From: Selaginella moellendorffii
Taxonomy: Eukaryota > Plantae > Lycopodiophyta
Direction of reading: 5' to 3'
Assembly (NCBI RefSeq): GCF_000143415.4
Contig: NW_003314305.1
Location: forward strand, 743,709-807,708
DNA length: 64,000 bases
Within the stretch, counting starts at the first letter, position 1; each line of letters opens with the position of its first letter. Below, piece by piece: positions 474 to 58,706 of this stretch. The position numbers and the translations under genes were made by a program. The notes beneath the pieces were generated by a model. The model was given only the letters and a program-made list of their open reading frames with translations. It was not told where the DNA came from and ran no database searches.

Positions 474-1320
474 CGCCAATTTGCTCGTCCGAATGTATGG
501 CAAATGCGGTAGGCCAAATGATGCCAAGTGAGTGTTTGACGACATCGACGCCAAGACGTTTTCTCGTGGTGACTGCATATGCCCAAAACGTGTATGCCCG
601 ATCGGGATACTGTTGCATGGAATACAATTCTTAGAGCGTACGCACAGCATGGCCATGTAGACGAGGCAAAAGATTCTCTTTTTTTTATTCCAAATCCCAA
701 CTTTTGTCGTGGACAACAATGCTTACAGCATATGCCCAAAGCGGGTTTATGTCTAGCGCGAAGCGTATGTTTGATTCTATGTCACCTCGCAATGCAATTG
801 CATGGAAATGAATGCTTGCTGGATATGCAAGACTCGGAGGTATCTTAGCCTCTTCAGGATTCTTTCGAAAGGTGCCCCAGCATGACACTATATCAGCTAC
901 TGCAATGGTTCCGGCATTTGCTGCGAGGGGCAATGACAGAGAGGCGTGTGCCTTGTTCGAGAATATGCCGGAGAGGAACGTCTTCTCATGGACGGCATTG
1001 CTCCAGGGATATGCTGAGAATCGTCTTCTAGACAAGGCAAAGAGCTACTTTGACAAGATGCCAGCATGGAATCTTGTGTTGTGGACTATGCTCGTTGTTT
1101 CATATGCTCAATGCGAGCGGCTTGAGATTGCACAAGACTTGTTTGTTGAGATGCCCGAGTAGAGCATAGTGACTTGGAATGCCTTGTTGGCAGTGATCGG
1201 GCATGCCAAGCCTTTGGAGGAGGCAAAGCTTTTCCTTGTCACTATGTCCGCATGGAACTTGGTGACCAAAAACACAATTTCTCAGATCAAGGAAGTCAAA
1301 CAAAGTGAAACCACTAGTTG
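474..1320 (+). pseudogene. PLS-class PPR pseudogene (copy 1)
   Basis: PPR motifs (LLVRMYGKC, MPDRDTVAWNT, FENMPERNVFSWTALLQGYAEN) are spread over several frames. An in-frame TAG lies at 1160-1162. Confidence 0.9.
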
Positions 1321-1337
1321 ACTTGGCTAATGCTTCT

Positions 1338-1530
1338 GTCAGGCTTGCTGGAAGAGGAGGCGTCATCGTTGGTGGATCGAACCACAGCCATGCAACGCGG
1401 GATACACAAGACTCTATTGCAGAAGGGAAAGACCATGGAAATGAAGAGCAAGAACAACTACAACTTCGATGTGGTACCAGGATCTCTTCCTGCGGTCTAA
1501 GAACATTGAGTTGTTTCTGGAGAACGAGCT
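1338..1530 (+). pseudogene. CAT: Catalase relic fused 3' of PPR copy 1
   Basis: [28 protein letters not shown] and KNIE-F-ENE match plant catalase [29 protein letters not shown]...KNIDNFFAENE. Large internal deletions. Confidence 0.8.
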
Positions 1531-1623: not shown

Positions 1624-3515
1624 ATGGCGGAGTCACAAGGCGCAGCCAAACTGATGTTGAATCCAAGGGAGAAACTCACTGGAGCACTTGTGATTGGCAT
1701 CGCTTTTGCAACTTTCGTGGCAACACTTGTGGTCACTGCCATCTTCGCGGTTCCAAAGATGATCAAGCCACCTCCAGGGGATTACTACCCGGATATCGTC
1801 AAGGAGGACAAGTGCTCTACTTGCTGGGAAGCCACCGTCTTTGCCACAAGCTCCGATCCATTCTACCAGTGGGTCTGTGATTCCTCACTCCCGGATACTC
1901 TTAACGCCTCGCTGAGGGGAACGCTTGCATGCCAGAGGGCCAGCATCTGGCGTGTTTCAGGCAATATCACCTCTGCAAATGAGAGCTCCTTGTATAGCTC
2001 GCCAGATCCCCACATTCTTGGAGGAGAGCTTGTCAAGAGAAGCAGGACTCTGGTGTGGAAGATGACAGTCTACTGGGGGATGAGTGTAAGAGCTTGTTTT
2101 GACTTGCTAAATCCCATGGAGGATTCATGTCTCTACACAACGCCGATCGTCCAGACCGCTCTTGGATCATATGCAGCGCTCTTGGTTGGCATTCCGTATC
2201 GGAAGGCTTCACAGAACCCATATGCCGTGGAGAGCAGCGCTTTGTATCTGGACAATAGTGCGGTGTATTTGACGAACTTTGTGAGCAACGCTAGAACCGG
2301 TGCTGGATTGAAGCTCAAAAGCTCTGGCAAAGGAATCAAGAACTACGTCTACGAAGGCCAGGTTTGCAACAGGGCCTCCCCGATCCTCATCACTCCGGAC
2401 GTGGTTTCCTACATGGGTTTTCCAAGCTTACAGTGCGCTTGCGATGGTATCCTTTGCCTTGTGGGTCTGAACATCACTGGCACAGCTTCGAATGAGGATA
2501 AGATTCTTCCTCTGAAACTAAATGCCTCCGGTTGTGGCCAGGGCATGTCGTTTTGGGATTGCGATAGATATCCTTTGAAAGAGCATAGAACCGAATTCTT
2601 CTCTTACAGCCCGAGATGGGAGAGATCGATACTACTCGAGGTGAATTTCAGCACAAACTTCGAGGAGGCAATCCGTGGTCCCAACCAGATACTCAAAGAC
2701 TTCGTTTCTTGCACCGAGGACACAATCCAGAAGAAGGATCCGAGCGATGACACACTAGTGTCAGATCTGCAGGAGTGCTTGAAAAGTCCAATTGTTGCCG
2801 TGAGCCCTAGCCCTCGCAAAAGAATCGTAAATGGGGAATTGCTGAAAGATCTCATGGACACCTTCAATAACAAGGTTCCAAACGACAAGGACGACAACTT
2901 CTTGTGTGGCATGGACGAAGGCCAGTCAAAGCTGGCGGACAAGTTGTGCACGGTAAGCTTGGACGATCTAAACATGCAAGTTCTGGAGAAGCGCTTGAGG
3001 GAGTCTTTAACGGACGTGCAAAGGTTCATGAAGGAGGAATGGGAGAGCACTTGGTCGCAGAGATCAGACGTAACTGTTGGGATTGTCACAGCGGTGGTGA
3101 CCATCCTTGTGACCATCTGGGGGATGTTCAACAAGGATTTGCAAAAGGTGGAGGCGTTGATCTTGAAGCGCGCAGGCAAATTCACCAGTGTTGTGAAAGT
3201 GACAATAGGACTTCCACTGTTTAAGACGGGAATTCGGGGTTTTCTGCTCTTGGGTGTAACATGTTTAACGTATTTGTCAGCTTGAATGCTGTGCGAAGTG
3301 AGCCCCGGCTTGCCACCTCGAAAACACTACTTCAGCAGCAGCAGGGGACCTTGTTCTTCTTGACTACAACTTCAACAGTTCAAGTCACTCCATCTTGGAT
3401 TATCTTCTTTGCAGCATGCTCGTTTGCAATCTTTGTGCTTGCCACAGTAACTTTCGGTGTGTACGTTCGCATGTGCTACGTGGAAAGAAAAGAAGAGGTA
3501 ACTGTACCATCTTAA
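1624..3515 (+). pseudogene. Unknown Cys-rich multi-pass membrane protein, copy A (frameshifted near 3' end; 553-aa truncated product possible)
   Basis: Near-identical to intact 12431-14332 but lacks the 10 nt GATCGTGTGG between 3257 and 3258. The missing C-terminus is ORF 3261-3515. Confidence 0.85.
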
Positions 3516-3841: not shown

Positions 3842-4869
3842 ATGAGTTCTCTCAAGAGAGCAGCCAGCCACGCCATTGAAGACTTCGCAACCGTGATTCG
3901 CCACTGTGCCAAATCCAAGGACTTGGCAAAGGGTCGCTGGATACACAACCAGATCATTTCAGATCAAAAGGAATACAGAGAGAATGTCTTCCTGCCCAAT
4001 TTTCTCGTCCAGATGTATGGCAAATGCAGTAGCCCAAATGATGCCAAGCGAGTGTTTGACGCCATCGACGCCAAGAACGTTTTCTCGTGGGCTGTTATGA
4101 TCACTGCATATACCCAAAACGGGTATCTGCAAGATGCTAAGCTTATCTTTGACGAGATGCCCCATGGAATACAATGCTTGGAGCGTACGCACAACACAGC
4201 CATGTAGAGAAGGAAAATATTCTTTTTGATTCGATTCCAAATCCCAACATTGTTTCGTGGACGACAATGCTTACAGCATATGCTCAAAGCGGGTATATGT
4301 CTAGCACGGAGCATATGTTTGATTCTATGTCACCTCGCAATGCAATTGCATGGACATCAATGCTTGCTGGATATGCAAGACTCGGAGGGTATCTTAGCCT
4401 CTCCAGGATTCTTTCGAAAGGTGCCCCAGCATGACACTATATCAGCTACTGCAATGGTTCCGGCATTTGCTGCGAGGGGCAATGACAGAGAGGCGTGTGC
4501 CTTGTTCGAGAATATGCCAGAGAGGAACGTCTTCTCATGGACGGCATTGCTCCAGGGATATGCCGAGAATCGTCTTCTAGACAAGGCAAAAAGCTACTTT
4601 GACAAGATGCCAGCATGGAATCTTGTGTCGTGGACTGTGCTCGTCATTTCATATGCTCAATGCGAGCGGCTTGAAATTGCACAAGACTTGTTTGTTGAGA
4701 TGCCCGAACGGAGCATAGTGACTTGGAATGCCTTGTTGGCAGCGATCGGGCACGCCTAGTTCTTGGAGGAGGCAAAGCTTTTCCTTGTCACTATGCCCGC
4801 ATGGAACTTGGTGACCAAAAACACAATATCTCAGATCAAGGAAGTCAAACAAAGTGAAACCACTAGTTG
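3842..4869 (+). pseudogene. PLS-class PPR pseudogene (copy 2)
   Basis: Begins FATVIRHCAKSKDLAKGRWIH...NVFLPNFLVQMYGKC, then PPR repeats in shifting frames. TAG at 4757-4759. Confidence 0.9.
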
Positions 4870-4886
4870 ACTTGGCTAATGCTTCT

Positions 4887-5185
4887 GTCATGAGTTTGCT
4901 GGAAAAGGAGGCGTCATCGTTGGTGGATCGAACCACAGCCATGCAACACAGGATGCACAAGACTCTATTGCAGAAGGGAAAGACCATGGAAATGAAGAGC
5001 GAGAACAACTACAACTTCGATGTTATACCAGGATCTCTTCCCACGGTCTAAGAACATTGACTTGTTTCCGGAGAACGAGCAACCGCTGCTTTGGTGGTGT
5101 TATTGCAAGATGAACTGCTTCAGACTTCTTGTACGCAGTGCACAGGCTGAGGCCGAACTATTTGCTGCTTCCTGCGAACGCTCTC
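4887..5185 (+). pseudogene. CAT: Catalase relic fused 3' of PPR copy 2
   Basis: [21 protein letters not shown] and [13 protein letters not shown] match catalase RLGPNYLQLPVNAPK and the upstream motifs. Confidence 0.8.
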
Positions 5186-5189
5186 AAAT

Positions 5190-5810
5190 TTGCACAACAA
5201 TCTCCATGAAATTCAGGTCAATTCTCTCTAATCTCAACAACCAACTCGAGCCCACTTATACAGATGATAGAAAGCCTCAAGATGATCACTCTCTCGTATC
5301 TACTCTCAAAGAAATCCCAGCTTCGGACACACAGGGAATTCTAACTCCTAAGGAGCACCAGCGTGCCTCACGAATTCTCAAACACTAGTTTATATACTAC
5401 CTACGCTGTCATTCCATGATCCTCTTGGATCACAACTGCAGATGCCCGATAGCAAATTCCTCCAGGCATCATTAGAAAATCCTCTGCGCCACCTTGCCAC
5501 CTGACCTTAGGCGGCAGCTTTAAGAGCAGACGCATAGGTTTGTAAAGAAGGGAGAGCACTTCGGCAGAGAGATCAAGGAGTTGCAAGAAGTTTGATCGTG
5601 AAAGGTCACCAAAGTTGTTAAAGATGGGAGTGTTTGTGCTCGTGGGTGTGACGTGTTCATAAAGCTTGTGAGCCTCGCCTTGCCACTTTAGAAACACTTC
5701 TCCAGCAGCTCAATGGGATCTCGTTCCTAGCGACTACAACCTCAACAGTTCAAGTCACTTGCAATCTAATTTGTATTTTTCAGTTACTTTTGGTGTGTAC
5801 ATTCGCATGA
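5190..5810 (+). pseudogene. Deletion-riddled relic of the unknown membrane-protein family
   Basis: Contains DDHSLVSTLKE (cf. DDTLVSDLQE), gggagagcacttcg, ETLLQQLNGISFLATTTSTVQVT and ttttggtgtgtacattcgcatg, colinear with the 3' half of 12431-14332. Confidence 0.7.
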
Positions 5811-9349: not shown

Positions 9350-10283
9350 CTGGATACACAGCCAGATAATTTCAGATCAAAAGGAATACAGAGAGAACGT
9401 CTTCCTGGCCAATTTACTCGTCCAGATGTATGGCAAATGCGGTAGCCCGAATGATGCCAAGCGAGTGTTTGACGAGAACGTTTTCTCGTGGGCCGTTATG
9501 ATGCTGCATATACCCAAAACGGGTATCTGCAAGATGCTAAGCTTATATTTGACGAGATGCCCGATCGGGATACTGTTGCATGGAATACAATGCTTGGAGC
9601 GTACGCACAGCATGGCATTGTAGACGGGAAAAAGATTCTTTTTTGTTTGATTGCAAATCTCAACTTTGTGTCGTGGACGACAATGCTTACAGCATATGCC
9701 CAAAACGGGTATATGTCTAGCGCGAAGCATATGTTTGATTCTATGTCACCTCGCAATGCAATTGCATGGAAATGAATGCTTGCTGGATATGCAAGACTCG
9801 GAGGTATCTTAACATTTTGAGGATGTTTTCGAAAGATACCCCAGTGACACGATATCAGCTACTGCAATGATTTCGGCATTTGCCGCGACGGGCAATGACA
9901 GAGAGGCATGTGCCTTGTTCGAGAATATGCCAGAGAGGAACGTCTTCTCATGGACGGCGTTGCTCCAGGGATATGCCGAGAATCGTCTTCTAGACAAGGC
10001 AAAGAGCTACTTTGACAAGATGCCAGCATGGAATCTTGTGCCGTGGACTGTGCTCGTCGTTTCATATGCTCAATCCGAGCGGCTTGAGATTGCACAAGAC
10101 TTGTTTGTGGAGATGCCCGAGCGGAGCATAGTGACTTGGAATGCCTTGTTGGCAGCGATTGGGCATGCCAAGTCTTTGGAGGAAGCGAAGCTTTTCCTTG
10201 TCACTATGCCCGCATGGAACTTGGTGACCAAAAACACAATCTCTCAGATCAAGGAAGTCAAACAAAGTGAAACCACTAGTTGA
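9350..10283 (+). pseudogene. PLS-class PPR pseudogene (copy 3, 5'-truncated)
   Basis: Same PPR unit, starting at WIHSQIISDQ, with frameshifts and a TGA at 9773-9775. Confidence 0.9.
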
Positions 10284-10298
10284 CTTGGCTAATGCTTC

Positions 10299-11043
10299 TG
10301 TCATGAGCTTGCTGGAAGAGGAGGCGTCATCGTTGGTGGATCGAACCACAGCCATGCAACGCGGGATACACAAGACTCTATTGCAGAAGGGAAAGACCAT
10401 GGAAATGAAGAGCGAGAACAACTACAACTTCGATGTTATACCAGGATCTCTACGCTGTGCACAGGCTGAGGCCGAACTATTTGCTGCTTCCTGCGAACGC
10501 TCCCAAGTGTGCTCATAACAACAACCATCACGAGGTGGTATGACAAGCAACGCTCTTGCTTTTACGTTCTATATTCTGTGTTTGCAGGTGAACTATTTCC
10601 CTTCCCATTTTGATCCTTGCCACCCTCTCGGTGGTCGACGAGAAGAGGTTTGTTTAGTCTACCTTTCAGCTTCTCATTTTATGCTTTGGCATTCTCTTGT
10701 AGGTGATGATTGAAAAGGAAAATAACTTTGCTCAGCCAGGAGCAACGTTCCGCTCCGGACCTGGTGACAGGCAAGATCTCAAACCTCTCTCTCAGCTAAT
10801 CATGTTTTAACTGAATCTCTGCTCCTCTTCCAGGCAAGAGCGTTTCATTGCGAGAGTTCTGGATGCTCTGTCCGACCCGCGCGTCACCCACGAAATCCGT
10901 AGCATCTGGCTCTCTTACTGGTCTCAGGTTAGACAATAAAGAAAATACAACATGTGATCAAACTCAACCATGAAAGTGTGCAGGCGGATCGTATGCTTGG
11001 TCAGAAGATTGCAACGAAATTCAACGTGAAAGCCAACATGTAA
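10299..11043 (+). pseudogene. CAT: Catalase pseudogene, 3' half with introns
   Basis: [24 protein letters not shown] | VNYFPSHFDP | IEKENNFAQPG | [31 protein letters not shown] | ADRMLGQKIATKFNVKANM* is the plant catalase C-terminus. The N-terminal haem-binding half is absent. Confidence 0.9.
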
Positions 11044-11419
11044 ACGGATAAAACTATATCTGTGTCCATCGTGGTGATCGTGGTGAAAGAAAGACGTACT
11101 AGTTTCAATTATTACTCTTTTTCTAACAATCCAAATCTGCATTATTATTGAGGTATGTTTCTTGCATTGTATTGCTTGAGTTTTATTTGTTACCCGAGAG
11201 ATCAGGCACCAGAGACTGTGGAATGCTCTTGTCACCACCTGTGTCTTTCTTGTTGCTCGTTGCTCCCTTGGTGTCATACCCAGGCCAAACCCCTGGACAG
11301 TTTGTTTGCTTTCCTTTTTCCAACAAGGTTCTCGTCTTGAGTCTGGAAGAGTGGTCGTCTAGCAAGAGTAGCATTTGGTGTCATGACAGGCTAGCCAACG
11401 TTATCTAAAGCTCACAAAC

Positions 11420-11940
11420 CTCATGAAGAGCGTCTTCCAGCCTCTGTAGCCCGCCCGGAGTAAGTTCCTCACAGTCGCACGCCGCAGTGACTATGGGCGT
11501 GTGGACACGAGGAACACTGTCCAGTTCGTTCTGAGAAGCGTCCTCACTGGAGCGATCGCCGGGACGCCTCTGGCGGCCCACAAGTTAAAGTCAGTGTCGT
11601 GGTAGCTCCCAGCTCTGCAAAGTTTTAACTTTCAACAGGGAAGGAAGAGATAGATCCAGACGTTACCCGAACTGCTTTGTAGCAAAGTAAGGCGTGGTTG
11701 AGAGGAGAGTACCATCGACATCAAACAGCCACGCATCAATGCCGGCCTGGCGCAGAAAGTCTGGGCTTGCTGGAATGCCAAGCTCGTTGCAGCTTGGACG
11801 TCGGTACTGTGGCCCGGTGGTGTAGCTCCGGACGTAGGGAACACACTCGGCAGGGACTCTCCAGCTCAAGAGGTTTCCAGACGCAACGCTAAACTGGAAG
11901 CTGCGACAGTAGGAATCCACGGACTGGGACCTTGGATCTC
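11420..11940 (-). pseudogene. HAD class IIIB acid phosphatase (vegetative-storage-protein-like) pseudogene
   Basis: SYCRSFQFSVASGNL..W.VPAECVPYVRSY, DAWLFDVDGTLLSTTPYF (DxDxT motif), FNLWAARG.PAI. Frameshifts and a missing C-terminus. Confidence 0.8.
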
Positions 11941-12430
11941 TCGGCGGGAGGGAAATGTGCTCGGGATGGAACGCTAGAATTTATATTTTTTTAGCTAGCT
12001 TTAAATAAATATGGTGAGAAATACCTCATAGGGAGGCAACTGAGGGAGCACATTCGTGCCCGTCCGCGACGACGACCAGAATTGATCCATTATATGTTTT
12101 ATAGTGGTACCTTTATGTTCATTAATACAGTATTTGTACCCAGTTTTATATAAGATCACAGCTTGTATGATCAATACTTATTGTTATTACAGGAGGGGAA
12201 AGATCATGTAGAATAGGCATAATTTTCCATCGTCGTTCGTTGTTGTTGTCAATCAATTCAATCAATCAATCAACGTTCATACAAAGAATTTTCACGTACT
12301 GCAACTATGCAAAGGGATTAATCACTTTATTCGCCACTTACTTACAAAAAAGTTAGTAACCTTTCTATATAAACTTCTATTCCAGCGGGTATCCACCGCA
12401 TAATCTATTTGAGCAGAGAACATTAGAGCT

Positions 12431-14332
12431 ATGGCGGAGTCACAAGGCGTACCTAAACTGATGTTGAATCCAAGGGAGAAACTCACTGGAGCGCTTTTGA
12501 TTGGCACCGCATTTGCAACTTTCGTCGCGACACTTCTGCTCACTGCCATCTTCGCGGTTCCAAAGATGAGCAAGCCACCTCCAGGGGATTACTACCCGGA
12601 TATCATCAAGGAGGACAAGTGTTCTACGTGCTGGGAAGCCACCGTCTTTGCCACAAGCTCCGATCCATTCTACCAGTGGGTCTCTGATTCCTCAGTCCCG
12701 GATACTCTTAACGCCTCGCTGAGGGGAACGCTTGCATACCAGAGGGCCAGCATCTGGCGTGTTTCGGGCAATATCACCTCTACAAATGAGAGGTCCTTGT
12801 ATAGCTCGCCAGATCCCCACATTCTTGGAGGAGAGCTTGTCAAAAGAAGCAGGACTCTGGTGTGGAAGATGACAGTCTACTGGGGGATGAGTGTAAGAGC
12901 TTGTTTCGACATCCAAGATCTCATCGAGGAGTCCTGTCTCTACACAACGCCGATCGTCCAGACCGCTCTTGGATCATATGCAGCGCTCTTGGTTGGCGTT
13001 CCGTATCGGAAGGCTTCACAGGAACCATATGCCGTGGAGAGCAGCGCTTTGTATCTGGACAATAGTGCGGTGTATTTGACGAACTTTGTGAGCAACGCTA
13101 GAACCAGTGCTGGATTGAAGCTCAAAAGCTCTGGCAAAGGAATCAAGAACTACGTCTACGAAGGCCAGGTTTGCAACAGGGCCTCCCCGATCCTCGTCAC
13201 CCCGGACGTGGTTTCTTACATGGGTTATCCAAGCTTCCAGTGCGCTTGCGATGGTAACCTTTGCCTTGTGGGTCTGGACTTCACTGGGACAGCTTCGAAT
13301 GAGGATGATATTTTTCCTCTGAAACTAAATGCCTCCGGGTGTGGCCAGGGCAATTCGTTTTGGGATTACGATAGGTTTCCTTTGGAAGAGAATAGAACCA
13401 GCTTCTACTCTTACAGCCCGAGATGGGAGACATCGATACTACTCGAGGTGAATTTCATCACAAACTTCATGGAGGCAATCCGTGGTCCCAACCAGATACT
13501 CAAAGATTTCGTTTCTTGCACCGAGGACACGATCCAGAAGAAGGCTCCGAGCGATGACACACTAGTGTCAGATCTGCAGGAGTGCTTGAAAAGTCCAATT
13601 GTTGCCGTGAGCCCTATCTTTCAAAAAAGACTCGTAAATGGGGAAATGTTTAAAGATCTCGTGGACACCTTAAATAGCGACGTTCCAGACGACGAGGACG
13701 ACAACTTCTTGTGTGGCATGGACGAAGGCCAGTCAAAGATGGCGGACAAGCTGTGCACGGTAAGCTTGGAGGATCTAAACATGCAAGTTCTGGAGAAGCG
13801 CTTGAGGGAGTCTCTAACGGACGTGCAAAGGTTCATGAAGAAGGAATGGGAGAGCACTTCGTCGCAGAGATCGGACATAACTGTTGGGATTGTCACAGCG
13901 GTGGTGACCATCCTTGTGACCATCTGGGGGATGTTCAACAGGGATTTGCAAGAGGTGGAGGCGTTGATCTTGAAGCACACAGGCAATTTCACCAGAGTTG
14001 TGCAAGCGACAATAGGACTTCCACTGTTTAAGACGGGAATTCGGGGTTTTCTACTCTTGGGTGTGATCGTGTGGAACATGTTTAACGTGTTTGTCAGCTT
14101 GAATGCTGTGGGAAGTGAGCCCCGGCTTGCCACCTCGAAAACACTACTTCAGCAGCAGCAGGGGGCCTTGTTCTTGGTGACTACAACTTCAACAGTTCAA
14201 GTCACTCCATCTTGGATTATCTTCTTTGCAGCGTGCTCGTTTGCAATCTTTGTGCTTGCCACAGTACCTTTCGGTGTGTACGTTCGCATGCGCTACGTGG
14301 AAAGAAAAGAAGAGGTAACTGTACCAGCTTAA
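12431..14332 (+). CDS. Unknown 633-aa intronless protein, predicted 4 TM helices with a large Cys-rich loop (copy B, intact)
   Basis: Uninterrupted ORF. Hydrophobic segments at about aa 20-43, 485-503, 540-558 and 597-619. Motifs conserved with a divergent paralog at 24874-26798. Confidence 0.9.
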   Translation: MAESQGVPKLMLNPREKLTGALLIGTAFATFVATLLLTAIFAVPKMSKPPPGDYYPDIIKEDKCSTCWEATVFATSSDPFYQWVSDSSVPDTLNASLRGTLAYQRASIWRVSGNITSTNERSLYSSPDPHILGGELVKRSRTLVWKMTVYWGMSVRACFDIQDLIEESCLYTTPIVQTALGSYAALLVGVPYRKASQEPYAVESSALYLDNSAVYLTNFVSNARTSAGLKLKSSGKGIKNYVYEGQVCNRASPILVTPDVVSYMGYPSFQCACDGNLCLVGLDFTGTASNEDDIFPLKLNASGCGQGNSFWDYDRFPLEENRTSFYSYSPRWETSILLEVNFITNFMEAIRGPNQILKDFVSCTEDTIQKKAPSDDTLVSDLQECLKSPIVAVSPIFQKRLVNGEMFKDLVDTLNSDVPDDEDDNFLCGMDEGQSKMADKLCTVSLEDLNMQVLEKRLRESLTDVQRFMKKEWESTSSQRSDITVGIVTAVVTILVTIWGMFNRDLQEVEALILKHTGNFTRVVQATIGLPLFKTGIRGFLLLGVIVWNMFNVFVSLNAVGSEPRLATSKTLLQQQQGALFLVTTTSTVQVTPSWIIFFAACSFAIFVLATVPFGVYVRMRYVERKEEVTVPA

Positions 14333-15195
14333 ATCATGCATGTTTATATAATTAATATGTATTCTTTGATGAGTGCCGCAACATTTGGATATAGATAGAG
14401 CTCAAGAAAAAGAGAAACTGATTAAAATGAAAGTAAGTAAAAAGTGTCAACCCACTCAATTTCATGCTGTGTAGAGTATCTTCTCATGTGTTACATGCTT
14501 TTGGTATCTGGAAAGTGTATAGTTTTTGCTTTTCTAAGGCATACAGCTTGCTTTCATTAAGCAGTCTTTATCTATTGTATTTGAAAGCAACGGTTCCAAG
14601 CATCCGGGCTACTGTCTTTGGAATAGAAGTTACTTACAGCCAGCTCTCGTGCTTGATTGCATTCGCCGCGCCCTTTTTCTTCCTCGTACAAGTAGGCCGT
14701 GGCATTGCCATAGCTTCTATGCTATGCTGCTCAATGTTCTCTTCTAACCATATATGATAACTCTTGTTGCATGAATGTGGATTTAAGAGAATTTCTCAGC
14801 CCACCACCGGGTGTTTTTGAAGATTCCCGACCAGGGCATGGAGCACAGTGGTGGAGTGAAGTTTTGTTTCCTCCTGGTGCCTGAGGAGTTTTAACGACCT
14901 CTGATATCAGTCCGAGCCAAATAACAATCTCATCACCCTCCACAGCAGAGCTCAAGAGAAATAGAAAGTAGATCCACTCCTACGAATTTTGCGGCGAACA
15001 GCTTGAGACTATGAGCACAAAAAGGCCAGCCCCACATAATGTGTGTGGTTTACGAACTATATCCAGGGATGATTGCGTCTTTCAACGCAGCAATAGCACA
15101 TTACTTCAGTATCGTGATCTATGATCAATTTTTTTATCCAAGAGGGCAAAAGAGAATAAGTCGTTTATAAAACCAGTAGTGTAGAATGCCGTTCT

Positions 15196-16221
15196 CAAGA
15201 GAGCAGCCAGCCACGCCATTGAAGACTTCGCAACCGTGATTCGCCACTGTGCCAAATCCAAGGACTTGGCAAAGGGTCGCTGGATACACAGCCAGATCAT
15301 TTCAGATCAAATGGAATACAGAGAGAACGTCTTCCTGGTCAATTTGCTCGTGCAGATGTATGGAAAATGCGGTAGCCCAAATGATGCCAAGCAAGTGTTT
15401 GACGCCATCGACGCCAAGAACGTTTTCTCGTGGGCAGTTATGATGACTGCATATACGGGTATCTGCAAGATGCTAAGCTTATATTTGACGAGATGCCCGA
15501 TCGGGATACTGTTGCGTGGAATACAATGCTTGGAGCGTACGCACAACACGGGCATGTAGACGAGGCAAAGATTCTTTTTGATTCGATTCCAAATCCCAAC
15601 ATTGTTTCGTGGACGACAATGCTTACAGCATATGCTCAAAGTGGGTATATGTCTACCGCGAAGCATATGTTTGATTCTATGTCACTTCGCAATGCAATTG
15701 CATGGACATCAATGCTTGCTGGATATGCAAGACTCGGAGGTATCTTAGCATCTTGAGGATTGTTTCGAAAGATGCCCCAGCATGACACTATATCAGCTAC
15801 TGCAATGGTTTCGGCATTTGCCGCGAGGGGCAATGACAGAGAGGCGTGTGCCTTGTTCGAGAATATGCCGGAGAGGAACGTCTTCTCATGGACGGCATTG
15901 CTCCAGGGATATGCCGAGAATCGTCTTCTAGACAAGGCAAAGAGCTACTTTGACAAGATGCCAGCATGGAATCTTGTGCCGTGGACTGTGCTCGTCGTTT
16001 CATATGCTCAATCCGAGCGGCTTGAGATTGCACAAGACTTGTTTGTGGAGATGCCCGAGCGGAGCATAGTGACTTGGAATGCCTTGTTGGCAGCGATTGG
16101 GCATGCCAAGTCTTTGGAGGAAGCGAAGCTTTTCCTTGTCACTATGCCCGCATGGAACTTGGTGACCAAAAACACAATCTCTCAGATCAAGGAAGTCAAA
16201 CAAAGTGAAACCACTAGTTGA
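15196..16221 (+). pseudogene. PLS-class PPR pseudogene (copy 4)
   Basis: Same PPR unit, with a frameshift near 15455 and a TGA at 15754-15756. Confidence 0.9.
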
Positions 16222-16237
16222 CTTGGCTAATGCTTCT

Positions 16238-16535
16238 GTCATGAGCTTGCTGGAAGAGGAGGCGTCATCGTTGGTGGATCGAACCACAGCCATGCAACGC
16301 GGGATACACAAGACTCTATTGCAGAAGGGAAAGACCATGGAAATGAAGAGCGAGAACAACTACAACTTCGATGTTATACCAGGATCTCTTCCTGCGGTCT
16401 AAGAACATTGACTTGTTTCCGGAGAACGAGCAACCGCTGCTTTGGTGGTGTTATTGCAAGATGAACTGCTTCAGACTTCTTGTACGCTGTGCACAGGCTG
16501 AGGCCGAACTATTTGCTGCTTCCTGCGAACGCTCT
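16238..16535 (+). pseudogene. CAT: Catalase relic fused 3' of PPR copy 4
   Basis: Same motifs as 4887-5185. Confidence 0.8.
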
Positions 16536-16539
16536 CAAA

Positions 16540-17153
16540 TTTGCACGACAATCTCCATGAAATTCAGGTCAATTCACTCTAATCTCAACAACCAACTCGA
16601 GCCACTTATACAGATGACAGAAAGCCTCAAGATGATCTCTCTCTCGTATCTACTCTCAAAGACATCCCAGCTTGGGGAATTCGAACTCCTAAGGAGCACC
16701 AGCCTGCCTCACGAATTCTCAAACACTAGCTTATATACTACCTACGCTGTCATTCCATGATCCTCTTGGGTCACAACTGCGGATGCCCGATAGCAAATTC
16801 CTCCAGGCATCATTAGAAAATCCTCTGCGCCACCTTGCCACCTGACCTTGGGCGGCACAAGCTTTAAGAGCAGACGCATAGGTTTGTAAAGAAGGGAGAG
16901 CACTTCGGCAGAGAGATCAAGGATTACTATTAGGATCGTAAAAGGTCACCAAAGTTGTGGGACTTCCATTGTTTAAGATGGGAGTGTTTGTGCTCGTGGG
17001 TGTGACGTGTTCATAAAGCTTGTGAGCCTCGCCTTGCCACTTCAGAAACACTTCTCCAGCAGCTCAATGGGATCTCGTTCCTAGCGACTACAACCTCAAC
17101 ATTGCAATCTAATTTGTATTTTTCAGTTACTTTTTTTGTGTGTACATTCGCAT
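16540..17153 (+). pseudogene. Second relic of the unknown membrane-protein family
   Basis: Duplicate of 5190-5810. Also retains ggacttcca.tgtttaaga (GLPLFK), which is present in copy B. Confidence 0.7.
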
Positions 17154-24873: not shown

Positions 24874-26798
24874 TTACGAGTTGATCTCTTCAGTCTTAAG
24901 CTTGTCGGATTTGCGCATTCTATGAAAGATTAGAACGACTGCTGCCACAAAGATAACAAATTCCAGTGAGCACACCCAAAATAAGATTGACCACCTGGGC
25001 ATCACTTCAATAGTGGAGGTGGTGGTGACCAAAAAGCTGATACCGTTCAACGGCTGGATGATTGTTCCAGAGGTGGCAAGACAACGCTTTAGTTCCACCT
25101 CTTTGATCATCTGAAATATGCTGAATGTGTTCCATATCATCACTCCAATGAGGATTAAGGCCCGTGCAAATGTTCTAAGCACTGAAAGTTGAAACTCTGT
25201 CCAATCAAATCTGATGAGCGACTTCTCAAAGTTCTCCGATGACTTGGCAAACATTCCCCAGATTGTGGCCCCGATCGTGAAGATCGCCACCAAGATCTCA
25301 AAGAGAACTTCAGCTCTCTTTGAAGACCCCTTCTCCCATTCCTTGAGGGCGAACCTCTTTATGTCCGCAACGTTTGCAAAGACATCCAGTTGCTGTGCTA
25401 GCATTGACATTTCTCCCGAGGACTTGAGCTTCGTCATGCTTAGCATGCACAAGTTCTGGCTCAGTGCTACTTGTCCTTGATCCGTGCCACAGTAGACGTC
25501 CTCTTGTGTGTTGCCAATGGGAACTTTATAATCAAACGTCGCTCTCATCCCCGATGCAGCAAGTGGGAATCGAAATATCATTTGACCGCTGTGAGAATAA
25601 TCAACGTTTGCCATGCCTTGAAGGGAACAGTCCTGGGAGATGGTTGTAAGAGGTTTTTCAACCGGGTGTTGCTCCAGCCATCCCTGAACACACGAGCTTA
25701 CGTTCTTTATGATCCCATAGTTAACGTCCTTCATCGCCTCTGAAAAGTATACAGCTGAACCAGAGCTAAATGTCACTTCAAAAGTGAATGATCCGTTTCG
25801 TTTGAGGCTGTATGTAGAGAACGTTGGAATGCCCTCAAGATTCCAAAGAGTGGAAGTCCTGCTATTACAGCTTGTAGAATTCAGCTTCAAAGGAGATATG
25901 CCTTGGTCCGAATCTGACAGCCGCGTCAAGTTGCTGTCAATGATGCAAACGTTCCCATCACAGCCACACTGATGGGTTGGAAATCCCAAATACGATATTA
26001 CATCCGGAATGATGAAAATGGGCTTGAATGCTTCACATACGTTTCCTTGGTACACATACTTGTTAACGTTGTTTCCCTTGTCTTTGTCAAGCGTGAGCCC
26101 AAGTTGAGTTCTAGCGTTACTCGCAAAGTTGGTCAAGTAATCTTCCCAGGGCAAATACAGGGAGCTGCTGCTCACCGAAAACATGTCTGACGAGGCCTTT
26201 CTGTACGGAACGCCCACCATGAGGACCGGATAAGAGCCCGTACCATTTGCATGGAGCTTGTTTGTCCAAACTACAGGAGCAGTGAAGGGCACGGCTCGCC
26301 AGTCGTTCTGGGCAAAGTGATGCAGAGTCGAACACTCATCCCCCAGTTGATAGACATCTCCCAAGCCAAACCTTTGCTTACATGGTGAAGGACTCCTCCT
26401 AGAACGTGGGGATCTGGAGAGTTGAACATGCTTGTACCATTCGATCGGGCATCTTTCATTCCAGAGATTCTCCATACACTTGCCCGCTGGTAGCCAAGAG
26501 TGCCTTTCTCGTCGAGCTTAAGTGCCATTGGAAGTGAGGAGCCAATTGCCCACTTGTAGAATGGATCGTTGTTTATAGCGTAGTAACTGGCCTCCCAGCA
26601 GGTAGAACCGTGATCTTGTGCGAGATCAGGAAAGTAATAACCAGGAGATGATGATGATTTTATCATTCTAGGAACCCAAACGTTGATGCATATTAAGGAA
26701 GCAAGGACAAGTGAGACCAAAACCACAATACATTTCATCTTGATGTTTTTGAAATCCTTTGGTCTCACGCTCCTTTCTTGAGGGTGCTGCCGGACCAT
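24874..26798 (-). pseudogene. Unknown membrane-protein family, divergent copy C (single 1-nt frameshift at about 26287; possibly a sequencing error)
   Basis: ORF 26271-26798 aligns to the N-terminus of copy B (STCWEA, DPFY.W, GTL.YQRAS.WR.SG, SPDPH.LGG, WGMSVR.C). ORF 24874-26475 aligns to the rest (VGVPYRKAS, YLTNF.SNART, C.CDGN.C, FLVTTTST). Confidence 0.85.
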
Positions 26799-26947
26799 GT
26801 ATATAGCATGGGCTCAGATTATCTAAATTGAAGATTCTGACATATTCTTGCTCTCGTGCTTCACCAGTAAGTCAAATTTTGCTTATGATATCTGAATTTT
26901 TTTTTCTGAAATATTTGCATCCATTACATTGAACCCATTCCCCCCCA

Positions 26948-26984
26948 AAAAAAATAAAAATAAAAATAAAAATAAAAATAAAAA
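26948..26984. repeat. (AAAAAT)n microsatellite
   Basis: About five to six tandem AAAAAT units. Confidence 0.85.
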
Positions 26985-28243
26985 CTGTGATAACAAAGTA
27001 AGTGATGATTCAGTTTTGACATATTCTTCAGTTTGGAATTTTCTAAGTAAGTGTGGTTTTGACTTTCTTTATAGAAAAAAAAATTACTTCTTCCTACATA
27101 TAGAAGCATCCTATGATACTTCTTCTTCTAATATTAAACTTACTGAAAGTTTGTAGGTATCACAAAAGAATATTTTAGATGTTGGTAGGCCTCATACATA
27201 CACACATATAAATGTGTAAATCTTCCTTCCATACAAACAATAAATTTAGTTATCAAAAATAATACACTAGTTCTGCAAAGTTAATAAAATATAAATATTT
27301 AAAATTAAATAGTGATAAATATTAATCTACACTTTGTGAGATCTATGATACCAAGGGTAGCTTTGATTATCCTTAAAAAATGCTTTGATTTGTGCTTTTG
27401 GTTTAAATCTAATTTTTGTATTGTTTAAATTATTTTTTTTGTAGCTTTATAATTTCTTCTTTGGTACTTTCTTTTTTTCATTTAGCTTTACGATAAAGTA
27501 GTAGCTTTCTCGTTCTTTGACTCTAAAGCAACAATTAGTGTAATTATTGATGTTATATGGTTGCAATTGAACAATTATATTTAGTTGTTGGTAACATTTA
27601 TAGTGTATGGTGTAATTCATTTTGCTCTTGCTACCAATCCTCACATATAACCAGAATTCTTTTGTAGGAATGTTAGGGATGATGTGTATTATTGATTCAA
27701 TTATTTTATGGTAATTGCCATCTATCATTTTTTGGGATAATGTTTGACATTTGAGTTTCTCACGTATTTCTAAAGGATAGTATAATGGTTTAAGCCTAGC
27801 CCTTAAATGAACTTTAACCCCCCAAATAAAATATCCTCTCTCACACTTAAAATATATTTTAGAGGGAATATTTAAAGAATTATTTGCTTCAAGATGCTTT
27901 ATCATAAACATACTTAACTCGTTTTATCTCATTGTGTCTTGTACTGGTTAATGACAAAAACCTATGTATATTGAGCTATAATCCTTTAATATTGCTACAT
28001 GATAGTTTAATGTATTCATCAAAAACCCTCACTACTATGTCCTATGTGTAAATTCTATTTCAATCCCATTGGCTATTTATAGAAAGTGTATAAATTTTCT
28101 AGTTAGGCATATCTATAGAATATAGAAATTATTTTGACCATAATAGTGTTGTTCCCATATCTAAATTTGCAATCTAGTGCCACTACATATTTAGTAAATT
28201 TTCATGATTGTCCTAGAGATTAACTCCTAAGATTGGAGTGAAA

Positions 28244-28801
28244 TGTAAGCTCTTGAATTTGGACTTTCCGGGAGGTCACCCAGCCCAGTATTATTCAAAC
28301 CCAAGGACGCTTAACCCCAAATATCCCAAGACCCTTAACCGATTGGAAAAGGGGGTGCACTTTTGTTCATGGGCCCTTTCCCTCTATATTTGAACCCCAA
28401 CGGATCGTCTCTCGAGTCGTTCCCTTTGGTTGCTTGCAATCCACCACGCTTCCCTACAAGTTCACGCCCTCGTGAACGGAAGCTGAGAGCCGCAGCTCTC
28501 CCGAGAGCGACTTGACACCCTACCCCTCGGGTCGAACCCAGCGGGAGCAAATTGGACCAGCTAGATGTCAATCAACATGTGGTGTGATTCCCTTAGCCAA
28601 CCAACAGAGTCGGACCCGAGACCGCTCTGATACCAAATGTAAGCTCTTGAATTTGGACTTCCCGGGAGGTCACCCAACCCAGTACTATTCAAACCCAAGG
28701 ACGCTTAACCCCAAATATCTCAAGACCCTTAACCGATTGGAAAAGGGGGTGCACGAACCCCAACGGATCATCTCTCGAGTCGTTCCCTTTGGTTGCTTGC
28801 A
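28244..28801 (-). mobile_element. Cassandra-type TRIM (non-autonomous LTR retrotransposon with 5S rRNA-derived LTRs)
   Basis: TG...CA LTRs at 28244-28438 and 28638-28801; 5-bp TSD TGAAA at 28239-28243 and 28802-28806; PBS TGGTATCAGAGC (- strand, 28624-28635); purine tract ..GTGGTGGAT next to the left LTR; 5S core at 28261-28315 and 28655-28709. Confidence 0.93.
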
Positions 28802-28834
28802 TGAAAGCCCAAAGCATATGTTTCTTGTGTTATG

Positions 28835-29538
28835 CCATTGATATGCTAAAATAATGCAAAATTTTATTTGGCTTTATTTTGCATGTTAGTTTTGACATTA
28901 AGATGTTAGATGTTCTAAAACTATCTTAATATCTTTTTATGCTCTTATCCCTTCACTTTTTAGCTATATGTTTGGGAATTTAGTCTTGTCCTTTTGTTCA
29001 GTGGCCCAAAGCTTTAACACTCTCTTGCCCTTGGCTATGTGTCTAAGGGTTTATATTTAGCTCTATGGTTATTCTATGGTAAAACATTATAAGATAAAGG
29101 GTAAAAACCATATGTATTACAATTATACATATAGATCTTTCTTAGCCTCATTGTTCATTTTTACTTTAGTGTATACAACATGATTAGTTTCCCAATCTTG
29201 CTAAATAGTATTTATTGAGACTAATTCTCTTATATCAATATAATACATATAGTTTTTACCCTATACCCTATAGTGAAATACTATAGAATAACTATGAAGC
29301 CAAACTTAACATTTGGACATGTGTACCAAGAGTATTCAAGTGGAATTTGAATTTTAAAACATTATACTACTGAATAAAGAGACGTATTTAGGAGAACTCC
29401 CAAATATACAACCAAGGAGCAAAAAAACATAAGAAGACCAACATTAAAATAACCTTAGAATATCAAATATTCAACACTAGCATTAACATATAAAATAGAG
29501 CTAAATAAAGTTTAGTGTTATTTTCATCATATTAGTGA
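28835..29538. mobile_element. Degenerate AT-rich foldback / MITE-like element
   Basis: Imperfect inverted arms at about 28835-29110 and 29253-29538. A related partial copy lies at about 31190-31483. Confidence 0.55.
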
Positions 29539-32500
29539 AGAATGATGAGGTGATGGCTTAGATAGTGGTAGCATTACATGGTTTATACCATTAAAAAAAT
29601 CCTTTTATGACTTGATCTTTAATATTTTAGCCTATCAATCTATGATTTACTTGTTTTTATTTTTCATTTGAACTTCTTATTTTTAAAAGTTTTTTTGCAC
29701 TTTGTTGCTATGAGCTTTATGTTTGATCCTAAATGACAAATTTCATCTAGAGTTGAAGGAAATCTTGATTGCATTTTCTCTTTCTTGTCGTTTCATCATA
29801 GGTGGAGAAGTTACATTACATACTTATCTACTGATATTTAAAAGAATGAATCTAGATTTAAGGGATTTTATAAATAAAATCTGGCTTTAGTTAATTAAAT
29901 AGATAGATATATTTATAAATTGTATATACTCGTAAGTGAAATAAAACACCTTAGTCTACTATATATTTGCATGGTGTCAAGAGCTCATTGTTGAGAGAAG
30001 GGGAGTACTTATGAAATACTAAAATAATAGAGAAGAAAAGTTGAATTTATAATAAAGAGAAAAATTAACTTGGGTATAGGTCTATACTAATATTATATGC
30101 CTATCCATATGTATAGCAAGTTTTTAATTCAAATTGTATAAGTAAAAGTTTCAAGTTTGATTCCCACCATAGTCAGCAGTGTTAAATATACTCAACAAAT
30201 ATAAAAATATGGCAAATATATAATATCATTTTATGGTTTGGATATTAAGTACCAATTAGCAATTAAAGTGGTGTAAAATCACAGTTAAAAGGATTTCTTT
30301 AATAGAAATTCACAACTAACTTAAAAGCATGAGTATAATGAGATGAATATGAGACACAAATCTAAAGTAGATTAAAAGGGTGTTACATGGCAGTGGTCAA
30401 AGCGAAATTTTAACAAATGTAACACGTCTGGACTAAAAACCTCTAACTCGGAAAGTTAAAAGTGGGAGTGGAACTCTTAAAGAAGTATTCAAGGATGAGT
30501 ACGAAACAATTAGTGAACAAGAGAAAGAGACACAAAAAGGACCAATACATGGCAAAAGTGCAATATAGTAGTGGTATAAGTGAAAGTTTAATGAGCATAT
30601 AAGAAGGACTAACATATGGCAAATGTTGTGACATGTGAAAGTGTCAAAACTGAGTCCAAGAAAGAGTCTAAGATGGAACTCAAGGTTGAGTTTAAGATGG
30701 AAGCCAAGATTGAATCCAAATCCGAATACTAATATAAGTCATAAGGTGAAAGCCCATAGTGATTGTTGCCCAAGAAGGGAAGGGAAGAGGGGGTCCAAAA
30801 GTCTAGTAAGTAGAGTGTGGGGGTTAGACTTCAATGGAATCAATTTGGCCAGGAAATGTTAGTGTGACTTAAAAAGGCTACACCTGTATGGTAGATAATG
30901 ATATAACTATTGAGGAATACAAAGTTAAAGTAAGTATAAATGGACAAATGAGGTAACTTAGTGAAGTGTTCAAAAACTGGCTCTAACTCCCTTAAGAGAT
31001 CAAATGGTTAATGCTCCCAATTCAAGTGTGGGTGGCATTACCTACTTAGATACCTAAGAGTGGATATAAATAGATGGATAGGTTAAAGGTATGGTCAATT
31101 AATTTGAGATATTATTTAACTCCTTATTAAATGTATTTATTTTTTATTCTACATTTGATTTGAGTCTAAACCCAAGCTCCATACCATACTAGTTGATAGA
31201 ATACCCATATCTTTGTATTAGGCTATTAGTATATCAAAATAGTATCAAACAATCTTAAAGCATCCAAAATCCTAATGTTAAGATTAATACACAAAATGAA
31301 GCCAAATTGAGTTACTTTATATTTTTATTTCTTCACTTTTTAGTTATATGTTCAAGAGTTCAACTCTATTTCTTCATTCAATGGCCTGAGATTTAAATTC
31401 CACTCCATTAATCTTAGTATATATATTGAAAGGGTTGAATTCCACTTTATATGGTAATGCACTATAAGGTATAGGGTAAAAATATGCTATATGAGCACAA
31501 GTTGAATATTATACTGGTCAAAGAAGAATGTTATGAGAAAGTGTAAACTCTTAATCAATGAAGTTTGTATTAACACCGCTATCATCTAAAACTTATAAAG
31601 AAAAATTAAATTTAATGGGCTGAAAGTGAGTAATGATATTGAAAGGTTTGGAGATCTTTAATGAAGGAATGGAGTTAATATAAGGAAAAGGAGTTGACAC
31701 TCACAACCCTTAATTAGACTAAATATTTTTGTTTTCTAGAACCACAAATGTTACATCCATTGTATAAGTCTGAGAGTGACTGCAAGCTCATGAAAGTGGT
31801 TTACATCATTATAATTCATGTAAAGTTAGTTCTCAATCTAACATCAATATTTAGCCTCAGAAATACACTATTAATATAAAGCTCTAATCTTTATTAGAAC
31901 TATGCTTTACTTATATACACCGAGATTATAATATAGAAAATGAGGCTAAAGATTCAATCTTAAAAGAACTCTCTAGTAAAGTTTCCAAACCATGTTAAAG
32001 ATGGGACTTAGGGTTAGTAACCTGGGACATGACAAGTGCTAAATAGGCTTTTTAAGAAAATGCTTTAAAGCAACTCCCATTCCCAAAATTCCTAAAAGTA
32101 AAATCAATTGTAATGTTCTTGACTCAAGTGGAGTGGTGCCCCACTTGAGTAATTAGTTTTCATCCCTTCTTTGGGGGCTTGGGCCTTCCTTTTGGAATGG
32201 AAGTTGAAAGTTAGGGTATTTATATCAAACTTATGCCACAGTGTTCCCTTTTGAGGTTTCAAACTAAGAAATATACCCAAGGTTTAGGATTTAAAGTACC
32301 CCATAAACAAGTTTTGTTATACCAAGAGATATTAAAAAATTTGAAAGCTTGGTGTACTTAGTTGCTTGTGTTTCTAACGAATGTATTTAAACCTTAAGTT
32401 TAGAGTTTAGAAATCTATGAAAAGATGGCTAACACCAAATTGCTCATATAGTAAGTAGCTATAGCTAAGTAGGACTAAATAGGAGTTAGTACAATATCAT

Positions 32501-33003
32501 CCAAAGTGGATGATTTGGTATTAATTTAAGTTTATGGTATATAGTTTTTCTAAAGAGTTTCTTGCCCAATGGAAGGGATTGTATCAAGTGTTCTGGCAAG
32601 TTGAACCATATATTTATAAGGTTTAACACAATATTCAATAAGTCAATCCTTTAAAAATTATGCATATGCAATCTTCTTTGGATGTTCTTCTAAATACGAG
32701 CCCATTAATATAAAAACCCTAATTGCCTTTTATACTTTTACAAAGAGGGGATGATGTGAGGTTCAAGTATATACTGTGATTATTACTAATATAGTTGCTT
32801 TGACTCACTCTTGTATATAAATTAGGGTTTTTAGGCTAATCAAATATGTATTCCATGCACTCACACATTTATAAGAAATATAACAAAGAAAAAAAAAACC
32901 ACTTATCAGCTACTATATAAATTAGTTTTAGGCTAGTAGCAAAATAATCATAAATAATTCATTTTATTCTAAGAGTATAATATAGCCCCAAATTGATAAT
33001 AAG

Positions 33004-57835: not shown

Positions 57836-58706
57836 TTGTCCGCACTGCCAGGCACTAGAAACTTTTTCAAAGAAAACTCAAGCATCTTTACCTGGGGAGA
57901 GATGGGGGGAACAACCAAGTGCTTCAGAAGCGACCTCAAGCTACTGGCAGCTTTGGCAGTCTACAAGGGGGCACCACGGTGGCCATCAAGAAAGCCAACA
58001 ACGGCAATGCCCCTCGCATTCAACAGTTTCTAAACGAGGTTACCATCCTCTCCAAAGTGAAACACAGAAATCTCGTCAAGGTGATGGGATGTTGCGTAGA
58101 AAGCGAAGTACCTCTCGTGGTCTACGAGTTCGTGCCAAGAGGAACACTGTACGAGCATCTGCACAAACGAGGAGATACGTTATCGTGGAAAAACCGTTTA
58201 AGAATTGCGACAGAGACAGCAGTGGCTCTTACGTACCTTCACTTTGCAGCTTCTCCACTGATATATCACCGGGACGTCAAATCCTCCAACATCTTGTTGG
58301 ACGAAAAGCTCACGGCCAAAGTAGCGGACTTTGGGATTTCCAAGCTGGTACCCATAGATTCCACTCACATTTCCACAACTCTGCATGGAACACTGGGTTA
58401 CATAGATAGTACCAGCAAAGCTATCAGCTTACAGATAAGAGCGACGTTTACAGCTTTGGAGTAGTCATCTTGGAGCTAATAACAGGTCAGATGCCTGTAG
58501 ACTTCTCTCGCTGTGCTTCAGATAAAAACCTGTCCACATTTGCAATGAGCGTCATACAAAGAGGAGCCATCAGCGAGTTGATCGACAAGAGGTTGGATGC
58601 TAGAACTCCAGAAATGCTGGAGTGCGTTGCAAAAGTTGCAAACTTGGCAGCTCTGAGCTTACAGTTCGACGGAAGTAGCAGGCCGACAATGAAGTTTGTT
58701 CTTTAA
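57836..58706 (+). pseudogene. Wall-associated kinase-like (WAK/WAKL) kinase-domain pseudogene
   Basis: VAIKKA, QFLNEVTILS..KHRNLVK..GCC.ESEVPL.VYEF, IYHRDVKSSNILLD, KVADFGISK, YQLTDKSDVYSFGVV. Frameshifts near 57960 and 58408; no ectodomain seen. Confidence 0.9.

Follow-up and report, generated by a model that had tools for sequence, protein, structure and literature searches.

Class II fusion proteins and fusexins (flavivirus E, HAP2-GCS1 and archaeal Fsx1) carry a disulfide-rich ectodomain of ~400-450 amino acids (aa), with 12 Cys in flavivirus E. In the KAR5/GEX1/Brambleberry proteins, which occur in plants, an N-terminal signal is followed by a luminal domain rich in Cys, a helical region and 1-3 C-terminal transmembrane segments (TMs). 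We compared these and other described systems with a gene family of the lycophyte Selaginella moellendorffii, studied in a window of 64,000 nucleotides (nt) (the whole stretch of DNA that was analysed: contig NW_003314305.1, positions 743,709 to 807,708, assembly GCF_000143415.4). The central gene, copy B (12431-14332, plus strand), is intact and is predicted to encode a Cys-rich protein with four TMs. It is best explained, from its sequence and those of its relatives, as a host gene that is functional and belongs to a family of multi-pass membrane glycoproteins restricted to Selaginella as far as the databases show.

The family shares with class II fusogens a signal or anchor, a disulfide-rich ectodomain, a membrane-proximal helix and 2-3 C-terminal TMs. 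However, its 12 aligned members gave no match to PF10699 or to a viral glycoprotein at E = 10, a poor structural model gave no fold match, the low-confidence model of copy B has a mixed alpha/beta ectodomain, and the family is found in host gene contexts. KAR5/GEX1/Brambleberry proteins have the same overall layout, but no Kar5/Tht1 Pfam match was found at E = 10, and these proteins are single-copy and eukaryote-wide whereas the Selaginella family is multi-copy and known from one lineage. Four TMs, extracellular beta-strands and conserved extracellular Cys are shared with the large-pore and claudin-like four-TM proteins pannexin, LRRC8, connexin and TARP. In these proteins, however, the first loop has tens of residues compared with ~440 aa in Selaginella, no Pfam match was found and the Foldseek matches were at noise level. 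P2X and ENaC-ASIC channels also place a large, Cys-rich, glycosylated ectodomain between TMs (glycosylation being predicted in the Selaginella family), but they have two TMs rather than four, no Pfam match was found, and P2X7 was matched with E above 1 over 75 columns. Tetraspanins, too, have four TMs and one large extracellular loop rich in Cys, but theirs lies between TM3 and TM4, is ~100 aa long and carries a CCG motif, whereas the Selaginella loop lies between TM1 and TM2, is ~440 aa long and comes with no PF00335 match. Plant immune receptors (receptor-like proteins, RLPs, and the DUF26/CRK group) show the same tandem arrays, pseudogenes, diversifying patches on a Cys-stabilised ectodomain and conserved anchor. 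Unlike plant RLPs and receptor-like kinases, the family has no LRR, DUF26, malectin, LysM, lectin or kinase domain, and its anchor is multi-pass rather than single-pass.

The first-pass annotation, made from the DNA letters, had described copy B as an intronless open reading frame (ORF) of 633 aa with an N-terminal anchor, a Cys-rich loop of about 440 aa with several N-x-S/T sites, three further helices and a beta-like segment between the last two. All of these features were recovered. The ORF listing showed a single unbroken frame of 633 codons with an ATG start, and the NCBI model SELMODRAFT_419925, on a scaffold of 1.63 Mb, was 100% identical to copy B across residues 1-630. A TATA box precedes the ATG (Table 1), and ~110 nt of core promoter and 5' untranslated region were conserved in four copies (A, B and two intact copies of a sister array on another scaffold). 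Copy B has no introns, while the adjoining acid phosphatase gene is spliced, with 52- and 61-nt introns seen in RNA contigs. The intronless claim holds for copy B and for the C type of the family, but not for the P0013 subfamily elsewhere in the genome, which has one intron.

Kyte-Doolittle hydropathy of copy B showed four hydrophobic segments (Table 1) with a loop of ~439 aa between the first two. Thirteen of its 14 Cys fall within this loop and 12 are family-invariant. Four of the five N-x-S/T sequons are also in the loop, and the fifth is in the predicted cytosolic loop between TM2 and TM3. A membrane-proximal helix at ~451-475 of the ectodomain holds the invariant W473. AlphaFold2 (AF2) with a 12-sequence alignment, read by DSSP, showed helices at all four segments and two strands (565-576 and 579-593) between TM3 and TM4, at a predicted local distance difference test (pLDDT) of 57-68. 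An invariant Arg (R538) stands at the start of TM3. The distribution of K/R and D/E in the 12 family members showed a weak fit to an N-in topology, which places the TM2-TM3 loop and the C-terminal tail in the cytosol and the hairpin outside. Members of the P0013 subfamily have an N-terminus that looks closer to a cleavable signal. Comparison of four segments of the family alignment by hhalign showed no internal repeats.

When 1.84 billion cluster representatives were searched exhaustively with phmmer, 9 matches were returned, every one from S. moellendorffii. Word-indexed protein searches with copy B, alignment A2 and P0013 as queries returned S. moellendorffii only, with one paralogue more. 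Because lycophyte proteomes are sparse in the databases searched, 'Selaginella-only' here means not found elsewhere, rather than absent. A maximum-likelihood tree showed five deep lineages (B-type, C-type, P0010-type, P0012/17-type and P0013-type) with internal branches of 0.4-1.9 changes per site, so the family is old. Its members are spread over at least six scaffolds.

At 26-40% identity, 12 Cys were invariant over all five subfamilies. Further invariant positions were W68, W83, W109, W145, W151-G152, W311 and W473 together with numerous Trp, Gly and Pro, and polar residues of the large domain (D78, E69, D259, Q270, R110 and R224). The motifs DPFYxW, AYQxxSxWR, WGxSxRxC and LATSxTxxQ...FLVTTTSTxEVTPxW were kept at the same identity. 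Genes of the B and C types have no introns, while those of the P0013 type have a single canonical GT..AG intron of 55 nt in TM3, at the point homologous to a 10-bp deletion in copy A, and this spliced subfamily sits among housekeeping genes. At locus L001 the neighbours of the family gene are UDPGT and MFS genes.

Searches for known domains gave no meaningful match. Pfam, queried with copy B and each of the 12 aligned members up to E = 10, returned noise only (CRIC_ras_sig, 0.11), as did scans of PHROGs and NCBIfam, and a PDB profile search returned just uS19 at E ~0.3, which is also noise. ESM Atlas feature searches with full-length copy B, its residues 45-345 and P0013 gave no usable match. 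Degenerate-pattern scans of viral (IMG/VR), metagenome and prokaryotic genome contigs found no relatives. In the literature, the locus tags are mentioned in no paper and the gene numbers are absent from the text of the Selaginella expression-atlas supplement.

AF2 with an 8-sequence alignment gave a useless model (pLDDT 29.5). The 12-sequence alignment raised pLDDT to 47.4, with 60-80 in the C-terminal module, 55-75 in residues 320-395 and below 50 for most of residues 45-320 of the ectodomain. Fold searches with the 47.4 model (PDB Foldseek, VIA-align wide, ESM Atlas and BFVD) found nothing beyond background: VIA-align returned generic helical bundles only, and the best TM-score in BFVD was 0.11, which is no match. 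The top Foldseek rows in the PDB were LRRC8, pannexin, connexin and TARP, with E of 0.5-3, probability ≤0.18 (≤0.11 for the large-pore channels) and TM-score ≤0.1; these rows and one for P2X7 were at noise level. A homotrimer prediction of residues 440-633 scored 0.00 with an uncertain fold, which speaks neither for nor against assembly.

We examined the copies of the family in the window and in the sister array. An 11-kb segmental duplication in the window contains copies A and B plus pentatricopeptide repeat (PPR) fragments. The 10-bp deletion of copy A shifts its reading frame, and three of its family-invariant residues are altered (Y103C, S477W and L582F); it is a probable young pseudogene. 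Copy C is also frameshifted, as judged against L003:9854-11791, a C-type ORF from a different scaffold that is intronless, intact and 96% identical to it in nt. The NCBI model P0009 spans this frameshift with an artificial intron and thereby loses the WGMSVR motif and two invariant Cys. Copy B is thus the sole intact family copy in the window, which also contains two relics of the hairpin and TM4. The sister array (scaffold GL377567.1) consists of a 6-kb unit repeated three times. Within the unit, an acid phosphatase gene on the minus strand is followed by the family gene on the plus strand, then by a PPR fragment and a fragment of catalase. Two of the three family genes are intact ORFs, of 647 and 644 aa, and the third is broken. 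The duplications at both loci carried the promoter and neighbouring genes along.

Substitution rates among the copies were compared as ω, the ratio of nonsynonymous to synonymous rates. By the Nei-Gojobori method, ω was 1.01 for B vs L2a, 0.88 for B vs L2b, 0.75 for L2a vs L2b and 0.94 for A vs B. The value was ~0.25 for the B-type vs the C-type, with synonymous divergence saturated, and 0.43 for P0013 vs P0021. With the GY94+F3X4 model on three intact B-type ORFs, ω was 1.13 for the whole gene, 2.13 for residues 148-177 plus 320-426 (variable patches 1 and 2) and 0.66 for the remainder of the gene. A likelihood-ratio test of the two patches against ω = 1 gave 2dlnL = 6.68, which is suggestive only, because the patches were picked post hoc, three sequences were used and gene conversion was ignored. 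Nonsynonymous changes fell mostly in the two patches, with ~57 nonsynonymous vs 6 synonymous changes in patch 2 between B and L2a, while residues 178-319 and the TM module were quiet among the B-type copies.

The maintenance of the intact copies is better supported by these sequences than ω > 1. Single-base changes in copy B create a stop in 4.0% of cases, so that the ~155 differences between B and L2a would be expected, under neutrality, to include ~6 stops. None was seen, and all four indels between the two copies were in frame, which indicates that the intact B-type copies have been maintained.

The first-pass annotation had further proposed an unrecognised family without a known domain, motifs conserved with the strongly diverged copy C under long purifying selection, and local tandem expansion with rapid turnover and hypervariable patches. 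The searches above agree with the first of these proposals. Motif conservation at ~37% identity to copy C, the 12 invariant Cys and the B-type vs C-type ω support the second, and the arrays, broken copies and patch divergence bear out the third. The annotation of copies A and C needed correction, both being frameshifted in the window. Its suggestion of horizontal acquisition was not supported: no viral, prokaryotic or metagenomic relatives were found, the GC content matches that of the flanks, which hold host genes, there is a spliced subfamily, and the family, being old, occupies several loci. Retroposition of copy B was not indicated either, the recent copies being segmental duplications that include the promoter; no search was made for poly(A) tracts or target-site duplications. 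Because the P0013 subfamily carries an intron, an ancient intron loss is possible.

To follow transcription, four sequencing runs (X1, X2, X6 and X7) were compared over 11000-16500. Runs X6 and X7 are RNA, because their contigs splice out the two acid phosphatase introns (CT..AC on the plus strand). Contigs of X7 and X2 spanned the ORF, left the promoter bin 12288-12471 uncovered and faded within ~300 nt past the stop. The B-type subfamily is transcribed, mostly from close paralogues of copy B. In X1, which may include DNA, and in X6, letters like those of copy B accounted for no more than part of the depth.

The reading that we favour, as a possible rather than a probable one, is that copy B encodes a surface-exposed recognition or binding protein engaged in a fast-changing interaction, either biotic (defence) or in self or gamete recognition. 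The N-terminus would lie in the cytosol, followed by TM1 or a signal anchor and by an extracytosolic domain of ~440 aa that is predicted to be N-glycosylated and held by six conserved disulfides. The membrane-proximal helix, TM2, a cytosolic loop, TM3, the external beta-hairpin, TM4 and a short basic tail would then follow. The variable patches may contact a ligand, while the invariant Cys scaffold and the conserved module of three TMs plus hairpin would anchor the protein and relay a signal. The B-type branch evolves by tandem birth-and-death, with amino-acid change focused in the two ectodomain patches. Several observations weigh against this reading. The test for ω > 1 has the limits given above, and the value of 0.66 outside the patches is high. 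The frequent pseudogenes fit relaxed constraint too, and patch 2 lies partly in a probably flexible, indel-rich segment (residues 396-426). Diagnostic letters at 12695-12718 in the RNA contigs mostly match the sister-array copies and not B. The taxonomic restriction may be an artefact of the few lycophyte proteomes available, and the ectodomain could still have a known binding or enzyme fold, since its pLDDT was so low.

Some of these points would also be expected if the B-type array were drifting to pseudogenes, with copy B now functionless and the patches being unconstrained linkers, an explanation that we consider unlikely. Overall ω near 1 in the B-type, the broken copies (two of the window's three and one of the sister array's three), and the prevalence of sister-array letters in the B-type RNA contigs all fit such a decay. 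The intactness of copy B alone is weak evidence here, because only ~2 stop-creating changes are expected on its branch. However, three copies are still open at ~8% divergence with in-frame indels only, change along the gene is strongly non-uniform (178-319 and the TM module being quiet), and the core promoter is conserved. Copy B retains all family-invariant residues, whereas the frameshifted copy A lost three, and B-type transcripts are present. A domesticated or endogenous envelope-type glycoprotein, that is a viral or retroelement fusogen now serving in cell fusion or as an entry-blocking decoy, appears less likely still. Its appeal comes from a loose likeness to class II fusion proteins and fusexins (12 Cys, a stem helix and 2-3 C-terminal TMs), from the intronless B and C types and from fast ectodomain change. 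Giant-virus relics have also been reported from the S. moellendorffii genome (PMC4083422). Yet we found no relative in IMG/VR, no fold match in BFVD or the PDB with a model too poor to exclude the three-domain, mostly beta fold and fusion loop of class II fusogens, and no HAP2-GCS1 or viral glycoprotein match in Pfam even at E = 10. Linked viral or transposon genes, or viral relatives, would mark an endogenous envelope; the flanks are instead host genes or fragments (acid phosphatase, PPR and catalase). One subfamily carries a canonical intron amid housekeeping genes, and the low-confidence AF2 model places several helices in the ectodomain.

Two further explanations, each with a poor chance of being correct, take the conserved features of the protein as their starting point. 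The four TMs, the conserved extracellular hairpin and the invariant R538 could belong to a subunit of an oligomeric or large-pore ion channel, in which the TMs would surround a pore and the giant loop and hairpin would form a vestibule or gate. LRRC8, pannexin, connexin and TARP do recur as top Foldseek rows, but at noise level, and no channel family, CALHM included, was found among the Pfam matches. The TM helices are plainly hydrophobic with no evident conserved polar face, and birth-and-death turnover with ω ~1 is rare in channels. The large conserved domain with its invariant polar residues could instead be that of an enzyme or chaperone facing the lumen of the secretory pathway, such as one that modifies glycans or cell walls, held by several TMs. 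The age of the family, its ordinary neighbourhoods (as at L001) and the stronger constraint on the P0013 subfamily (ω 0.43) are consistent with an enzyme. However, the library searches showed no similarity to an enzyme family, and the hypervariable patches and rapid turnover of the B-type would be unusual for one.

The neighbours of copy B are in keeping with a lycophyte nuclear region: PPR genes and fragments that lack introns, a class-B acid phosphatase gene that is spliced, and F-box ORFs. At the family loci examined, acid phosphatase, PPR and catalase fragments and, at a greater distance, a pair of F-box ORFs were present, but no Crinkler-like gene. The coordinates of its features are collected in Table 1.

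Table 1. Features of copy B, other family copies and neighbouring elements; positions are those of the window.
Feature	Position	Strand	Remarks
Copy B, intact intronless ORF, 633 aa	12431..14332	+	All family-invariant residues kept
TATA box ctatataaac	12366..12375	+	~60 nt 5' of copy B ATG
TM1 or signal anchor, residues 20-44	12488..12562	+	Short K/R-containing N-terminus before TM1
Ectodomain, residues 45-483	12563..13879	+	12 invariant Cys, 4 sequons
Variable patch 1, residues 148-177	12872..12961	+
Variable patch 2, residues 320-426	13388..13708	+	Nonsynonymous changes and in-frame indels cluster
TM2, residues 484-503	13880..13939	+	Hydropathy, AF2
TM3, residues 537-558	14039..14104	+	Hydropathy
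Beta-hairpin loop, residues 559-592	14105..14206	+	Motif LATSxTxxQ...FLVTTTSTxEVTPxW, strongly conserved
TM4, residues 593-618	14207..14284	+	Short basic tail after TM4
Copy A	1624..3515	+	96% nt identity to B; 10-bp deletion between 3257 and 3258, in TM3
Copy C, C-type	24874..26798	-	~37% identical to B; 1-nt deletion near 26290
Relic of hairpin and TM4, profile positions 574-614	5652..5807	+
Relic of hairpin and TM4, profile positions 574-616	17006..17152	+	Duplicate of 5652-5807 relic in 11-kb repeat unit
Acid phosphatase, class B (HAD-type)	10924..11967	-	DVDGT motif; introns 11359-11419 and 11615-11666, from RNA contigs
PPR gene fragments (4)	883..1529; 4251..5080; 9666..10493; 15602..16431		85-98% identical; alternate with the 4-TM copies; part of duplication unit
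Catalase-like exon fragment	16237..16331
ORF, 470 aa	39444..40856	+	Hydrophobic stretches, no Pfam match
ORF, 306 aa	40882..41802	+	Hydrophobic stretches, no Pfam match
Intronless ORF, 771 aa	49171..51486	-	F-box in mid-protein
Intronless ORF, 820 aa	54781..57243	-	F-box in mid-protein (E = 1.5e-5)
ORF fragment with protein kinase subdomain motifs	57919..58464	+	HRDVKSSNILLD, DFG
AT-rich blocks	26000..33000; 60000..62000		GC 0.29-0.37 vs ~0.46 elsewhere

The acid phosphatase gene lies head-to-head with copy B, ~460 bp apart, and the same pairing is repeated at the three units of the sister array (L002). The unit equivalent to that of the catalase-like fragment (L002:1057-1914) has a Pfam Catalase match. 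The contig depth of the acid phosphatase was far above that of the 4-TM gene contigs; contig depth cannot rank genes. RNA contigs over the catalase fragment had very high depth and ran at both ends into sequence unlike the window, and are presumably reads of a real catalase mRNA. In the promoter region between the two genes, contigs of three runs had an 'opposite strands' joint from 12099/12100 to 12272/12273. A search there for an inverted repeat that would explain it was negative, and either a chimeric assembly or a structural variant of a paralogous unit may be the cause. Contigs of three runs also skipped 434 nt at 14600-15035, with ends CA..CA that are non-canonical for splicing; a deletion that sets a paralogous or allelic unit apart is a likelier cause than an intron.

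Two gene models of the P0013 subfamily, P0014 (SELMODRAFT_427541) and P0022 (SELMODRAFT_419126), have 764 and 852 aa compared with the norm of ~650. The extra stretch of P0014 is a subtilase fragment (Peptidase_S8, E = 0.004), so P0014 is probably a mis-fused model, and the Peptidase_S8 match was rejected as a product of this fusion.

Elsewhere in the window, the 771- and 820-aa ORFs are paralogous and ~5.6 kb apart; the F-box is their sole recognisable feature and the rest has no Pfam match. The consecutive 470- and 306-aa ORFs may be exons of one gene. The kinase-like fragment is probably an exon of a receptor-like kinase, and the AT-rich blocks may be transposon-derived.

All other vascular plants form the sister group of the lycophytes, whose lineage-specific genes are, to our knowledge, almost unexplored. 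The family described here is large and old, and the sequence and fold comparisons that were run showed no relative. It combines a membrane module and an invariant scaffold of putative disulfides with diversifying patches and birth-and-death turnover, traits typical of immune and mating recognition. There is a slim chance that it represents an unseen class of eukaryotic surface machinery, such as a lycophyte-specific fusogen, a gamete or self-recognition protein or a receptor-channel, in which the six-disulfide ectodomain and the module of three TMs and hairpin would have a fold unrelated to known ones. If the family proved to be a diverged member of a known one, the interest would drop to that of an ordinary expanded gene family. 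If a ligand were found, copy B and its relatives could point to a mode of surface recognition in an early vascular plant that is non-canonical, using neither LRRs nor kinases, or to a new membrane protein fold.

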